Origin: Octopus bimaculoides
Lineage: Eukaryota
Assembly (NCBI RefSeq): GCF_001194135.2
Contig: NC_068986.1
Coordinates: 106,787,958-106,822,649 of the forward strand
Direction of reading: 5' to 3'
Length of the DNA stretch: 34,692 nt
Both the position numbers and the translations under genes were made by a program. The notes under the pieces were generated by a model. The model worked only from the letters and a program-made list of their open reading frames with translations, searched no databases and was not told the DNA's origin. Of the stretch, positions 1,620 through 34,459 are shown one piece after another; position 1 is the stretch's first letter; the number at the start of each line of letters is the position of its first letter.

Positions 1620-2128
1620 GCCAACCCATTTTCGTTTGTTTACGTCTCTGTAACATAGGATTTAGAAGCTTTAAAATAATGTTAGTATTCTGGTGCATCT
1701 GTTCGGTATGGTGACCCACGATGTTCGAAGTTGAATGACTAAAACGTGTAAAATATAAAGTATAAAGAATAACTAGTTAATTATGTCAGAAATTCGTAGT
1801 TATTTCCTTGGAAAAATCTGCACAACATGAGAGCACAGTGGGTCGTTGAAAAATTATTGCTGTACCTATGATACACACAGAGAGAACTTTTGGCGGAAAT
1901 CGAAAGAAAGGTAGGGAAGTAGATTCTAGTGCAAAATAATAATATTTTACGGCACACGTGATAAATCAAAAATAAATAATTATCACTGAAAGCCTACTGT
2001 CAGAAACATCTGAAGTTTTATTTATTATGAAACAGCTGCTGTCTGCAATGCGTTGCCGTTGAGAAGAAATTCAAAAATTATATATATCATTTCCATATTT
2101 CTGAGGCAGCTATCTTCAAGCTTATAAG
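1620..2128 (+). promoter_or_regulatory. Putative promoter and non-coding exon 1 of paralogue A, ending at donor AAG|GTAAGG (GT at 2129)
   Basis: Block is homologous to 28175-28641. Both copies keep TATAAAG, a CACGTG E-box, a highly conserved final ~140 nt and the same donor. No long ORF. TSS unknown. Confidence 0.55.
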
Positions 2129-2769
2129 GTAAGGGAAAGTGTGGTTCGATATTTTTATTTAAGTATCTAATGTTTGAAAGACTCATAAAATTAAACATAT
2201 GTAAGGCATATGATGATGAATGGGAGAATTTCATTAATAATGGAAATGTTCTAATATTTTTTTTATTTCTCAAGGTTTATATTTCACATAAAAGATAATG
2301 CAACATATGCACACGAAATGCACTCACGCACACTCACGTGCGTATGCATATATGTACTTAAACATATACATACATGCATACGCACAATTATAACCACTGA
2401 GATGAGTATTAAGACAATGTTCTTCTGAAAATATTGATTGCTATAACTCATTCCAAACAGTTATGTCCATACATCCGTATCTGTTAACGGTTATTTTTAA
2501 TATTTTTTTCGTTGTATTGCTTGTTCGTTGGATTTTTCCATCAGCCATTTTATTTCCGATCGTCTATGTTACAGAAGATATTTCCTTCGTTTTACGGCTT
2601 TTCCTTTCACTAAAATGAGCGGATACATTGCAGAAACTTTATTTTAATGTATTGTATCTATTTATCACTCGATGAGATATATCTGCACCACCGGATGCTC
2701 CTGAATCAGTTGTTGAGTGTCCCACCCGTGAAGGATCGATGCTAGAAGATGTGTTGAAGCAATGGTCGT

Positions 2770-2920
2770 AATTAATGATAAAAATTCTCATATATTCTAT
2801 CTGTCTTTTTAGCCGAACCACTGGCATGCTGTATCTATGATCCAGCATAGTTTGTCTTCTTTCTCAATTAAGACTATGTCCAGCTTCCTATTCTCCATCT
2901 CATGGTCGCTCTGAATCATA
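2770..2920 (-). mobile_element. Decayed R4/Dong-type LINE RLE fragment (family C)
   Basis: Minus strand MIQSDHEMENRKLDIVLIEKEDKLCWIIDTAC resembles the R-P-D-I-V...IID RLE motif. The 5' end abuts the (AAT)n run at 2921-2984. Confidence 0.7.
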
Positions 2921-2984
2921 AAATAATAATAATAATAATAATAATAATAATAATAATAATAATAATAATAATAATAATAATAAT

Positions 2985-3862
2985 CATATTATCTCTGGCT
3001 GCCCAGTCCTGGCTAAGAAGGAATATATTCACAGACGCGACAGAACTGGGACCTATATACACTGGAAGCTATGCCAACACTATGGAATAACAACAGAAAA
3101 AAGATGGTATAAACACACGCCAGAAAAGGTCACAGAAAACGAGAAAGCAACCATACTTTGGGATATGCCAATACACACAGATAGAGAAATTAAGGCAAAT
3201 AGACCAGATATAGTTGTCAAAGATCACGAAGAAAAAAAATGCTTTCTAATTGATGTATCAATACCAGCAGATGACAACGTCTCTCTAAAAGAAATGGAAA
3301 AACTNNNNNNNNNNNNNNNNNNNNNNNNNNNNNNNNNNNNNNNNNNNNNNNNNNNNNNNNNNNNNNNNNNNNNNNNNNNNNNNNNNNNNNNNNNNNNNNN
3401 NNNNNNNNNNNNNNNNNNNNNNNNNNNNNNNNNNNNNNNNNNNNNNNNNNNNNNNNNNNNNNNNNNNNNNNNNNNNNNNNNNNNNNNNNNNNNNNNNNNN
3501 NNNNNNNNNNNNNNNNNNNNNNNNNNNNNNNNNNNNNNNNNNNNNNNNNNNNNNNNNNNNNNNNNNNNNNNNNNNNNNNNNNNNNNNNNNNNNNNNNNNN
3601 NNNNNNNNNNNNNNNNNNNNNNNNNNNNNNNNNNNNNNNNNNNNNNNNNNNNNNNNNNNNNNNNNNNNNNNNNNNNNNNNNNNNNNNNNNNNNNNNNNNN
3701 NNNNNNNNNNNNNNNNNNNNNNNNNNNNNNNNNNNNNNNNNNNNNNNNNNNNNNNNNNNNNNNNNNNNNNNNNNNNNNNNNNNNNNNNAGCACATACCCA
3801 AGGCGCACAGAGCTGCGCTCGGTAGTGAAGTGAAAGCACATTATAAAAATAAAACTACTGAA
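2985..3862 (+). mobile_element. 5'-truncated R4/Dong-type LINE (family A), zinc knuckle end and RLE, interrupted by an N-gap
   Basis: Open frame HIISGCPVLAKKEYIHRRDR...WYKHTPEKVTENEKATILWDMPIHTDREIKANRPDIVVKD..CFLIDVSIP. The 3' UTR after the gap matches 4550-4620 and 30933-31000. (AAT)n on both sides. Confidence 0.9.
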
Positions 3863-3940
3863 CAATAATAATAATAATAATAATAATAATAATAATAATA
3901 ATAATAATAATAATAATAATAATAATAATAATAATAATAA

Positions 3941-4468
3941 ATGCCCTGATGCAGTACCAGGCAGTGGCTCTCGTGGTTTCTGATCTTAATTGGTTGGAAG
4001 TGTTATCATGTGGGCTACTGCAAATATTATGCTCAATACTACAGATTTTCTTGTCAGTTGTTTGACCTTAACCAGTTGAGCATGTTCCTTGGTGGCTGAT
4101 GATATGTGCATCTCTGATCATGAGCAGAAGTAGTGGGGAGCGTCATAGCCATGTGTTGAGAAGAATTGTTTGGGGTTTGAATAATTCACCTTTGGAAACA
4201 TGGGTGTTTTGCTCAACATCCTTAAAGAAACCTTATTCAGGGACCTTTTGAGCGGGATGGGCTACTCGACCAGAAGAAAATTCTAACTGGGCCCCACCTG
4301 CGAGGTCATGCGCTGTTTATCTTGATATGAGATAACCATGTCGCGCACATATGGTGTGATGCATGTGCCTGGTGTACCCTTATCAGACGGGTAGTCATGA
4401 TAGGTATATTGGACTTCGTATATTTTACCCCAGTGTCAATTTGATGGCATGCACTGCTCTCTCACTCA
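3941..4468. mobile_element. ~530-bp unclassified element bounded by (AAT)n on both sides
   Basis: GC-richer than its surroundings, no recognisable ORF, sharp microsatellite boundaries. Confidence 0.5.
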
Positions 4469-31866: not shown

Positions 31867-32055
31867 TACTACACTTATGTTTTCAAATGATTTCATGCAT
31901 TCAATGTATTCAAATATTGAAGATTATAAAGTCCAACATATAATGTCTTAACCATACATAAGAGCCACATTTCATAAAAAAATACGTCATCATTCATGAT
32001 ATGAAAATATCCAATATTTAATGACAGCTTTTGCTTCTTCCTTTTTTTCTTACAG

Positions 32056-32164
32056 ATGTTTACACATTCAGTTTTGTGTTCTGGTTTAGTCTTTTTTTCT
32101 AGTCTTATGTTATTCCGAAATCTAATCCTATCTAATGTTCTTGTGACAGCTGCTATACCTAAGC
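32056..32164 (+). CDS. Paralogue B exon 2: MFTHSVLCSGLVFFSSLMLFRNLILSNVLVTAAIPK, phase 1. Later exons probably lie beyond the window.
   Basis: TTTTCTTACAG|ATG and C|GTAAGT. In-frame 3-nt indel relative to paralogue A. Confidence 0.75.
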
Positions 32165-32612
32165 GTAAGTACCAATTCCCTTTACATTCTAAAATATTTA
32201 TTTGATGCAGTAATCTAATAACTGCTTCGTTCTTCGTTTAAGTACACTCGCTCTATTTCCTGTGATGAATTCCAATATCTTAAATCATCAGATATTTCTG
32301 AAACAATGTTTCGAACCCATTATCCCACCAGGACGAATTCGCTAATTTTACGCATTTCACTAGAAAATCTGACTTAGTAACAAGCTTGTAAAAAAAGCTA
32401 AAATGGCCGAAAAAGAAGGCAACCATTAACTATTTCTTTAGCTGCAATTCTAATCCACATTGCTTTATGTTTTTTTATAGTTTTTATGGAACTACAAACA
32501 ATACTACCGGTACGTTTTTATCTTTTGTGAATTATGTATCACTTTTAGTTCTGTTAAATAACCTACACAAAAATATTATGTCGTCAGTCCAGGGCATTCT
32601 CTATTTAATTCC

Positions 32613-32910
32613 AGAAGAAAGTAATTCAACAACGCGGGTTGATGAACCGTAAGACGTGTGGCCAGAACCTCCTGGAAAATAACCATAGCGAGGGACATTC
32701 CACAGTTGAATTAGAACAGTCACAAACAGTGAAAGAAGACATGCACCCAACACCAGAGCTGAAGACACCTCCGAAAGGGGGTGGCCCCGCCACGTCAAAA
32801 CGGTAGAGGAGTAGGGGCCGAAACCGGACGTGGTTCCTCCTGATGATGTCTTGAGCTAACTGGATCCTATAAAGGAGCTGTTGTGGTAGCAGACCACGAA
32901 ACATGGTTGA
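32613..32910. mobile_element. 298-bp unclassified insertion with 6-bp TSD AATTCC
   Basis: Absent from paralogue A (~10660). AATTCC at 32607-32612 and 32911-32916. Confidence 0.6.
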
Positions 32911-33953
32911 AATTCCTCCTTATGAAATACTGGCTTTGAATACAATGATTCTTTGTCTCAATCTACCACTAACATTTGCTTACGGAGACTTGCATATTTA
33001 TTTTTTAACTAACTCCGGTAAATTCGAAAGTGAATGTGTTATTCGCTAAAATATTTTGACTCAGGGGGACAATTTCTCTTTTACAACGTATAGGTTTTCA
33101 TAACACAACACAATCGATTCATTACTAAGAAGGTTGTGGTATAGCCGATGATTCCACATCGCGGTGTCCGGTCAACCAAAAACACAACGTGGCCAATGAA
33201 TCTAACAAGAGCTGTCCTCAGAAACCCTCGTGTTAATGAACCGTGTTTGATAAAAACAGTGGTAGTAAAGGAGAGGTTGTTGTCCAGTGAGGAAAAACAT
33301 CAGCAATCAACGTACTCAGGTTCGAATATACCGGAACGCATTGCATATTCATGGATACAATCCATCGGTTTTTTTTCTTCCCACTTTGCATATAGTGATT
33401 CATGACATTTAGTAAGCTTCCTTTTAGTGATCAAATTCAAATACATGACTTCTCTGATACCTTTTCGTAACCTTATTATTGATATATATGTATACATATA
33501 TATATATATATATATATATATATATATATATATATATATATCAATGTCTGTATGTTATACGACTATCCTCGTCATTGGGCCGATTATATGATATAATATG
33601 ACATAAAATCAAGAGGTCTAATTTAATATTTTAGTGAATTAATATAATATTGAAGCTCTTAGTTTCAATAATCTACAAATGAAAGTAGTTAATACTCCAT
33701 CTCCTCTGTCTATAAATGATCGGTCCTTGAATTTATAATTGATAAATAAGCATCGTATGTTACTGTTACCTCCAGATTGCAAAGGATGTTTGTATGCAGA
33801 TAAATGCTTCTGTCCCAACCAAACTGTCATTATCAGAAAGACATATGATTGTATTCTTCTAGAATGCAGAGGAACTTACGCTGACATTAAGAGACTGTGT
33901 AAGTAAATATAAATAGTATATGTTCTCACATATTTTACATCCAGTATCATATA

Positions 33954-34316
33954 GGCGCAAGCATAGCTTCATGGTAAGGAACTTGCTTACCAACCACATG
34001 GTTCCGGGTTCAGTCACACTGCATGACATTTTGGGGAAGTGTTTCCTACTATATCTTCGTCGGATATGTGTGTGTGTGTGTGTGTGTGTGTGTGTGTGTA
34101 TCAGTGTGTATGCGTACGTGTGAGCGCGAGTATTTGTCTGTGTCTGTACCCTCTCTCCATCGCTTCAAAACATGTGTTGATGTGTCCATATCACCGTAAT
34201 TTTGCGGTTACCAAGCTTAAAAACAAGGAATTATGCTGAGTGATTCGACCAAAACTCTTCTAGACAGTTCCCCAGCCATCCCGCAGACTGAGGACGGAAG
34301 TAGGTAAAAGATAAAA
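33954..34316 (+). mobile_element. Old SINE shared with paralogue A (11541-11915)
   Basis: tRNA-like head with GGTTCAGTC, TG tract, same flanks as the copy in A. Confidence 0.75.
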
Positions 34317-34459
34317 CATAAAAGAACGTATTGGTGTAGTTGGTATCAACTATGCATAATTTTTCAAATATTTAAAACTAGGGGAACCCATGGAAATTAA
34401 CTAAATGAAAAAATGGACCTATATATACGTTTGTGCGAGTATTATATATGTGTGCGGGG

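Follow-up and report, generated by a model that had tools for sequence, protein, structure and literature searches.

A gene and a neighbouring copy from a likely Octopus-restricted family of predicted secreted 12-cysteine proteins in Octopus bimaculoides

In the fibronectin gene, type I (FnI) modules are each encoded by their own phase 1-1 exon; the FnI fold and the subdomain at the N-terminus of VWC are alike in structure, and FnI complexes such as 3cal and 3ejh form by beta-strand addition. The hallmark of VWC is a C-terminal CC-x-x-C and that of Ly6 is CC-x(4)-CN. Cephalopod genomes are noted for lineage-specific expansions, most of them uncharacterised apart from e.g. reflectins, protocadherins and C2H2 zinc fingers. 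FnI pairs, VWC/SVWC domains, Ly6/uPAR three-finger proteins and the MgCRP-I peptides of Mytilus are the described systems with which the genes reported here are best compared. The stretch analysed (34,692 nucleotides (nt) of O. bimaculoides contig NC_068986.1, positions 106,787,958-106,822,649 of the forward strand; hereafter the window) probably holds two neighbouring same-strand members, gene A (LOC106872050) and copy B, of an apparently Octopus-restricted family of predicted secreted proteins with 12 cysteines.

A protein search with a 101-amino acid (aa) product, assembled in an earlier note on this DNA, gave two matches, LOC106872050 of O. bimaculoides (P0001, 142 aa) and LOC118763690 of O. 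sinensis (P0002, 152 aa). Positions 52-28776 of the window are base-for-base identical, gaps included, to GCA_001194135.2 CM046606.1 106,788,009-106,816,733 (L001), and the LOC106872050 coding sequence runs from 10052 (L001 position 10001) to 18776 (L001 18725). The 142-aa protein is encoded by four coding exons on the + strand, all bounded by AG/GT. Exon 1 (10052..10157, 106 nt; P0001 residues 1-35) carries the ATG and a hydrophobic leader, MFIHPILFSGLVIFCFMVLPNLILSGVVVKSVVHD, and ends in a phase-1 donor. Exon 2 (11363..11485, 123 nt, phase 1-1), with an AG acceptor and a GT donor, encodes a six-cysteine module, NCPGCYYNGKCMCSNQTIMLRRTYDCILLECRGNYADIKKM, which matches residues 36-76 by tblastn and includes an N-x-T sequon (NQT) at a position common to several paralogues. 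Exon 3 (13237..13368, 132 nt, phase 1-1, AG/GT-flanked; nearest gaps 276 nt and 373 nt away) encodes a four-cysteine module, (F)CLDPNGNCMAHEDKWRGRIKNTCVTFYCEIINDKAQLSVVFDL, with a 100% match to residues 78-120, and the terminal exon (18709..18776) encodes VCFPDHVVGSMMYFMGPHIALC (residues 121-142) followed by a TAA stop. A pattern match to the polyadenylation signal AATAAA lies at 18813..18818 (+), and a gap from 18843 covers the end of the 3′ untranslated region (UTR). Past the leader the precursor contains 12 cysteines (residues 37, 40, 46, 48, 61, 66, 78, 85, 100, 105, 122 and 142). The hydrophobic N-terminus is a putative signal peptide, and secretion, as predicted, would fit with the N-x-T sequon and the 12 cysteines.

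The essentials of the earlier note's interpretation are supported, with one exon missed and the cysteine count wrong. The AG|ATG exon with a phase-1 donor that it had singled out coincides with the first coding exon of LOC106872050, and the 132-nt exon and the candidate terminal exon upstream of AATAAA coincide with the third and fourth. However, its 101-aa product with six cysteines skips the 123-nt exon at 11363-11485, and the real protein has 142 aa and 12 mature cysteines. This exon is symmetric (phase 1-1), so skipping it keeps the frame open and the shorter product looked plausible; it lies within sequence that had been read, inside the duplicated block described below and outside any N gap. 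Nor is gene A hidden, as had been proposed of the family, since it is already annotated in RefSeq as protein-coding, and only copy B apparently lacks a database protein.

Two database models differ at the N-terminus of this gene. An older or alternative model, P0020 (UniProt A0A0L8IEX7), has an extension derived from a low-complexity exon with a leucine run at window ~5400-5580 (5399-5578), and the O. sinensis model P0002 has one from an 11-aa exon (positions 10001-10033 of the O. sinensis locus L002). These exons are not conserved between O. bimaculoides and O. sinensis, and so they probably represent either artefacts of prediction or exons of the 5′ UTR. A coding sequence that continues from the leader exon into the following intron (open reading frame (ORF) 9809-10372) was considered and rejected, as 1-nt indels disrupt the frame in copy B and a stop codon does so in O. 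sinensis.

The window (37% G+C) contains many microsatellites and 11 runs of N, which the earlier note had thought capable of concealing extra exons. None of these runs touches a coding exon, all being intronic or past the polyadenylation signal. In O. sinensis, the orthologue LOC118763690 has the same four coding exons at a gap-free locus (L002), where no additional coding exon was found. Order and strand agree between the two species across every gap: window 1687-2808 corresponds to L002 3012-4126, 10002-11914 to 10658-12902, 12083-12380 to 18880-19177, 13141-13481 to 20712-21052, 14688-15164 to 29705-30182, 18581-18842 to 30514-30764 and 22182-22912 to 39708-40647, all on the same strand. 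An alignment of the LOC106872050 and LOC118763690 proteins runs through all 142 residues with no indels. Given the collinear gap-free locus and this alignment, no coding exon of gene A is concealed in the gaps, and the order of the scaffold is credible. At 8.3 and 9.7 kb, introns 3 and 4 of the O. sinensis gene far exceed those in the window (1.75 and 5.3 kb), so the gap lengths in the window are probably underestimates.

An exhaustive HMMER search with a profile of the gene A and O. sinensis proteins against 1.84 billion representative proteins gave 11 matches at E <= 1e-3, ten of which are credible (E 1e-6 to 1e-92) and all from Octopus; cluster look-up showed that all ten are named as "uncharacterized" or "hypothetical" proteins. 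Paralogues matched this profile with E values of 2.6e-26 to 9.4e-07. The other match, P0012 (E 4e-4), the only one not Octopus-like, is a repetitive 274-aa protein with 24 residues matched and was judged spurious on inspection. A word-index profile search added three genes, LOC106869794, LOC128248058 and LOC128248167, with which the annotated family members in O. bimaculoides number at least 12, every one of them on CM046606.1 (117 Mb). Five same-strand members, including copy B, lie within 96 kb (106.727-106.823 Mb): LOC128248081 (106,726,954-106,744,774, +), LOC128248170 (106,756,158-106,763,064, +), LOC128248169 (106,771,389-106,779,598, +), LOC106872050 (gene A; 106,798,009-106,806,733, +) and copy B (from ~106,816,140, +). 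Others map to 90.68 Mb (LOC106869796, a two-domain protein, -), 90.74 Mb (LOC106869804, +), 103.76 Mb (LOC106872966, -), 107.17 Mb (LOC128248058, -) and 107.22 Mb (LOC128248178, +).

All paralogues mapped by tblastn (window and L002-L008) share a layout of four coding exons, comprising a leader, modules of 41 aa and 43-44 aa, and a 22-aa tail. Junctions are phase-1 across the family, those of A and B having been checked base by base. In an alignment of 14 sequences ten of the cysteines never vary and the other two hardly do; near-invariance extends to D80, G83, G94 and V101, and every member has a hydrophobic N-terminus of ~16-30 aa. Several members have an N-x-T sequon directly after the C-x-C pair. 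In the protein libraries searched, relatives outside O. bimaculoides came only from O. sinensis and O. vulgaris. With at least 12 paralogues on one chromosome and relatives only in Octopus, the earlier proposal that genes for small secreted Cys-rich proteins form a lineage-specific family by tandem duplication holds.

Further variation was seen at two of the family loci. LOC106869796 (P0019; L009, CM046606.1 90,678,445-90,702,372, -) encodes a 216-aa protein with two consecutive 10-cysteine two-module units and a single C-terminal tail, a layout that points to duplication of a block of exons within a gene, beside duplication of whole genes. Around LOC128248058 (L008), a family-type terminal exon lies upstream (1439-1504, +; 77% identical to the tail of O. 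vulgaris P0011) and a small 128-aa gene lies just downstream (25949-27025, -). The sub-cluster at 107.17 Mb probably holds more members than those mapped. No papers were found in the searchable literature for the LOC and UniProt identifiers of the family, and topical literature gave no description of such an octopus gene family.

Self-BLAST of the window revealed two collinear, same-strand homologous blocks, as the earlier note had observed. The first comprises 1611-2162 vs 28183-28673 (77.9% identity) and 2159-2345 vs 29400-29586 (80.3%), and the second 10002-10460 vs 32007-32466 (86.8%), 10674-10978 vs 32920-33249 (78.6%) and 10986-11914 vs 33372-34315 (73.6%), all in the same order; homology thus stops at ~34315 rather than extending to 34420, as had been thought. 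The upstream conserved block of gene A (1611..2128, +) is a putative promoter together with a putative non-coding first exon, bounded by a GT donor at 2129, and is 78% identical to its counterpart in copy B (28183..28641, +; GT donor 28642), which begins at the edge of a gap (27640-28174), and ~90% identical to O. sinensis L002 3012-3654. The two donors, already noticed as conserved, share the near-identical context TATAAG|GTAAGGGAAAGTGTGGTTCG, and the ~150 nt preceding them are nearly identical in A and B.

In copy B, coding exon 1 (32056..32164, +, 109 nt) encodes MFTHSVLCSGLVFFSSLMLFRNLILSNVLVTAAIPK and ends in a phase-1 donor; its ORF is intact, AG/GT are conserved and it differs in length from that of A by one in-frame 3-nt insertion. 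Coding exon 2 (33776..33898, +, 123 nt, phase 1-1) encodes (H)CKGCLYADKCFCPNQTVIIRKTYDCILLECRGTYADIKRL and is the homologue of 11363-11485 in gene A, with 66% aa identity to that module and all six cysteines, the NQT sequon and AG/GT retained. These are the two coding exons of copy B seen in the window. By analogy with gene A, later exons should lie beyond 34692, the 132-nt exon being expected at least ~1.8 kb past 33898. Along the second block, identity between A and O. sinensis (85-98%) exceeds that between A and B and between B and O. sinensis, which are similar to each other (73-91%), and on these comparisons the A/B duplication is dated to before the O. bimaculoides/O. sinensis split.

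We consider copy B to be, most likely, a still-functional and fast-evolving paralogue with its 3′ exons outside the window. The alternative that best survives is that it is a non-functional relic, i.e. a partial or decaying duplicate, in which case the window would contain one real gene and a pseudogene; we regard this as unlikely. Consistent with decay, the B exons are no better conserved than introns (21.8% of sites differ from A in exons vs 18.3% in aligned introns), dN exceeds dS in the leader exon (non-synonymous and synonymous substitution rates, A vs B), the first intron of B contains a 726-bp repeat and a fragment of a reverse transcriptase from a long interspersed nuclear element (LINE), and the 3′ exons are out of view. 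However, the ATG, ORF, phase, all four splice dinucleotides, all six cysteines and NQT have been kept even though the duplication predates the species split. Of 22 A-B indels in introns, 20 are not a multiple of 3, while exons have a single 3-nt indel. In neutral simulations using intronic substitution and indel rates, the ATG and ORF remained intact with P = 0.008 and six cysteines were kept with P = 0.049; the joint probability including four splice dinucleotides is ~1e-4, although the simulation assigns the whole A-B divergence to decay and so makes a recently inactivated copy look less probable than it is. Long-term neutrality of copy B is very unlikely on this basis. A conserved intronic element next to the B leader exon, described below, is also retained at 90-99% identity.

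The rapid change in B exons is shared with bona fide orthologues. Between A and the O. sinensis orthologue dN/dS is 0.43 for the module exon, 2.5 for the leader exon, 0.60 for the mature part and 0.79 overall, and between A and B it is 0.52 for the module exon and >1 for the leader exon (small counts), the per-exon pattern of one comparison mirroring that of the other; all these values are based on 10-31 substitutions. Gene A thus appears to be fast-evolving, with dN/dS of ~0.8 against O. sinensis.

The spliced peptide of copy B shares no words with any protein in a collection of 5.8 billion sequences, and neither this single-sequence word-index search nor the family-profile search found a database protein for it, although the index is incomplete. 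Members of the query alignment (P0003, P0004, P0005 and P0007) were not returned, and the search with the B peptide missed P0001 despite a shared stretch of 10 identical residues. Copy B is therefore only apparently absent from protein databases, an absence that is suggestive but not proof and that counts on the side of a relic.

Some points weigh against the reading of the window as two members of an Octopus-restricted secreted family. Copy B is known from two coding exons, and later ones could be missing or broken; lacking a database protein, it may also have lacked transcript support or have been called a pseudogene by annotators. Restriction to Octopus hinges on how well the protein libraries represent other cephalopods. 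Secretion, use of exon 1 (the upstream block 1611..2128 serving as a non-coding exon) and activity of copy B are all inferred.

The conserved element opens the intron that follows the leader exon in gene A (10158..10460, +), copy B (32165..32466, +) and O. sinensis (L002 10814-11119). Over its full length the identity is 90-91% for A vs B and 87-95% for A vs O. sinensis, exceeding that of the adjoining coding exon, and reaches ~99% between A and B in a core of ~100 nt (10250-10350 vs 32255-32355). Within this core A and B show 0 differences over 85 consecutive columns, at 5 of which A and O. sinensis differ. The greater closeness of A here to B than to the O. sinensis orthologue points to one of two causes, a short tract of gene conversion or strong constraint on an element for regulation or splicing. 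The element is non-coding, its frame being broken in B and in O. sinensis. A structured RNA, a short interspersed nuclear element (SINE) derived from tRNA and an Rfam family were each considered and rejected, with 0 of 61 pairs covarying in RNAalifold and nothing found by Rfam (at gathering score) or ARAGORN. The minus strand carries a motif, GGTTCGAA, which by eye we take to resemble a tRNA B-box.

AlphaFold2, given the family alignment, modelled the precursor with a predicted local distance difference test score (pLDDT) of 77.6 (~90 in the core and low in the leader, with a low-confidence helix at residues 6-18) and the mature region with a pLDDT of 85.3 and a predicted template-modelling (TM) score of 0.71. 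The mature model is all-beta, with strands assigned by DSSP at 7-9, 12-14, 18-23, 27-34, 37-46, 58-63, 66-75 and 78-85 followed by a short helix; module 1 consists of a hairpin and three strands, an arrangement that would fit the FnI fold, in which an N-terminal beta-hairpin packs on a three-stranded antiparallel sheet (~45 aa). In both Foldseek runs the top PDB matches were FnI pairs of human fibronectin, 8-9FnI (3ejh, 3gxe) and 2-3FnI (2cku, 2cg6, 3cal), and the N-terminal F1 pair (1qgb) (probability 0.87-1.0, target-normalised TM 0.35-0.56, 85-93 aligned columns, E 0.005-0.2, root-mean-square deviation 4-6 Å). FnI pairs are the best and almost the sole credible structural matches to both models, and they span both octopus modules. 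The likeness extends to modules of ~40-45 aa that are all-beta and presumably disulfide-stabilised, to the encoding of each on its own phase 1-1 exon and to a presumed extracellular location. Similarity between modules 1 and 2 was also considered, but an internal duplication is unsupported (hhalign probability 0.14, E 0.41).

Other observations count against too close an identification with FnI. The model was built from only 14-15 closely related sequences, and the fold match is weak, with no Foldseek E <= 0.001 and TM mostly <0.5. Pfam gave no match for P0001 or P0002 at E <= 10, or for the 14 members at E <= 1 (fn1, VWC and UPAR_LY6 included), and a PDB sequence search with the family profile gave none at E <= 10. 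The octopus proteins have six and four cysteines in the two modules and two more in the tail, in contrast to four per FnI module; module 2 has the spacing C-x6-C-x14-C-x4-C, while module 1, with six cysteines, departs from the FnI pattern of four bonded 1-3 and 2-4. They are also small and free-standing, whereas FnI modules are parts of a large mosaic protein to which the octopus family has no sequence-level match. The gene A protein is best described as FnI-pair-like in predicted architecture, not as a member of the fn1 family. To our knowledge FnI is known only from chordates, which makes homology with the octopus modules doubtful, and convergence is at least as likely. No direct statement was found in literature on the taxonomic range of FnI (including PMC5006582).

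It is improbable, more so than decay of copy B, that the proteins are divergent but true members of VWC/SVWC, with binding of bone morphogenetic protein-type ligands or a role like that of the cytokine Vago, or of Ly6/uPAR, acting in receptor modulation or as toxins. Small, secreted Cys-rich proteins with a G...W beta-hairpin region and lineage-specific expansions are features of SVWC (e.g. arthropod Vago), VWC and chordin-like repeats too, and the earlier note had loosely compared the Cys/Trp spacing with that of VWC-like modules. This comparison finds no support in sequence tests, since none of the 14 members has a VWC, SVWC-type or UPAR_LY6 match in Pfam, but finds an echo at the level of fold, where the closest predicted structure is the FnI pair, with its resemblance to the VWC N-terminal subdomain. 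VWF C4 and D'D3 chains do appear in the Foldseek results but only at ranks 24 and 42, with probability 0.13-0.6 and E >1. The 14-sequence alignment has C-x-C but no CC pair, and the family lacks C-x-x-C-x-C and the C-terminal CC-x-x-C of VWC as well as the CC-x(4)-CN of Ly6. Ly6/uPAR proteins are of similar size, secreted, disulfide-rich and all-beta, yet no three-finger structure is among the Foldseek matches listed. The paralogue LOC106872966 (P0006, UniProt A0A0L8H3R2) is automatically named "UPAR/Ly6 domain-containing protein" in UniProt, a name without Pfam support in any member.

In general organisation the octopus family is also like other taxon-restricted molluscan families of secreted Cys-rich proteins, e.g. 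MgCRP-I of Mytilus (PMC4558851), both consisting of short secreted peptides or proteins in which the cysteine framework is invariant, the mature region varies and homologues are confined to a narrow lineage. The sequences and cysteine frameworks are unrelated, however, and the octopus proteins are larger, with 12 cysteines and two modules, and are known to date only as database predictions.

That the recurring blocks are merely a dispersed high-copy repeat or transposable element with coincidental exon-like features is effectively refuted: the window is indeed rich in LINE reverse-transcriptase fragments, has a Helitron-type PIF1 helicase fragment, a SINE-like repeat and the B-box-like motif, and part of block 2 (~11540-11826) matches a dispersed repeat in family loci L004, L005 and L007, but the blocks are collinear and same-strand, contain exons with matches in an annotated protein and in ten paralogues, have no tRNA or Rfam matches and show no further copies in the 257 kb of family loci searched, where 1611-2345, 10002-10460 and 10461-11340 are matched only by A, B and the orthologous position of O. 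sinensis; a match to a dispersed high-copy repeat is what the earlier note had said would refute its reading.

Genuine repeats do interrupt the A/B homology. A 726-bp dispersed repeat with an (AC)n tract (28674..29399) is inserted 32 nt after the donor in the first intron of copy B, making block 1 twice as long there as in copy A. The dispersed (AC)n/(TG)n repeat is ~450 bp in length, with ~30 copies of at least 120 nt in the family loci, many in L002, L005 and L007, and others in the window at 979-1424 and 14551-14735 (-). Fragments of LINE-type retrotransposons lie at 29753-30780 (+), 3165-3304 (+), 6117-6833 (-) and 8700-9964 (ORFs including 9125-9459, -). They fill the long first introns, so that the spacing of the blocks differs between A (7.7 kb) and B (2.4 kb). 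ORF 30010-30414 has a sub-threshold match to RVT_1 (E 0.0055), and region 8700-9964 is 84% identical to L002 6275-7508, with more copies in L002.

Between A and B, a PIF1-like helicase fragment (22918-23256, +; Pfam PF05970, E 4e-22) is probably a Helitron relic, and a pair of direct repeats with 71% identity (23330-23765 vs 24272-24658) adjoins it. Intron 4 of gene A contains a repeat cluster (16007-16879) in which one pair of repeats is direct (16007-16215 vs 16345-16551; 87%) and another is inverted (16029-16351 vs 16879-16553; 78%). A 93-aa ORF at 19888-20169 (-) has the motif YVVTF...CCYSYIGQTSWHL..., which by eye we take to be that of a GIY-YIG endonuclease of Penelope-like or related elements; an overlapping ORF (19646-19960, -) has no Pfam match.

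If secretion is as predicted, the hydrophobic leader would be removed on entry to the secretory pathway, leaving a mature protein of ~105-110 aa with 12 invariant cysteines, presumably paired in six disulfides, and a single conserved sequon for N-glycosylation. Its two beta modules, each delimited by an exon, would lead into a short C-terminal tail that the last two cysteines hold in place. Because the predicted fold resembles an FnI pair, we infer that the likeliest action is that of an extracellular disulfide-stabilised binding protein or ligand. Contact with partners would be made through exposed edges of beta-sheets and may, by analogy with FnI pairs, involve beta-strand addition, the cysteine scaffold remaining fixed as surface residues change rapidly. 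Copy B (28183 to beyond 34692) would have arisen by duplication of a whole gene unit before the O. bimaculoides/O. sinensis split, and the family would have grown by repeated local tandem duplication on one chromosome. Only tentatively can the models be extended to suggest that the array, with a dN/dS close to 1 and additional unannotated copies such as B, encodes free-standing two-module FnI-like proteins serving a fast-changing extracellular interface, for example in saliva/venom, mucosal defence, sucker/skin or reproduction, and we hold this to be doubtful.

The family is an uncharacterised, apparently genus-restricted set of predicted secreted Cys-rich proteins, familiar in kind but with a mildly intriguing predicted fold. 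It is new to description, with at least 12 genes plus unannotated copies, and has no Pfam model, solved relative or mention in the searchable literature. Copy B indicates that current annotation misses family members, and the overlooked phase 1-1 exon of gene A illustrates how symmetric exons can escape the eye with the frame unbroken. The small disulfide-rich members would be practical subjects for expression and structure solving, and proteomics or in situ hybridisation could serve to localise them. Should the FnI-like fold prove real, it would inform the question of how a module class regarded as chordate-specific arose: the FnI/VWC-subdomain module would either be of greater age and wider distribution than has been supposed, or have been invented separately in octopuses.

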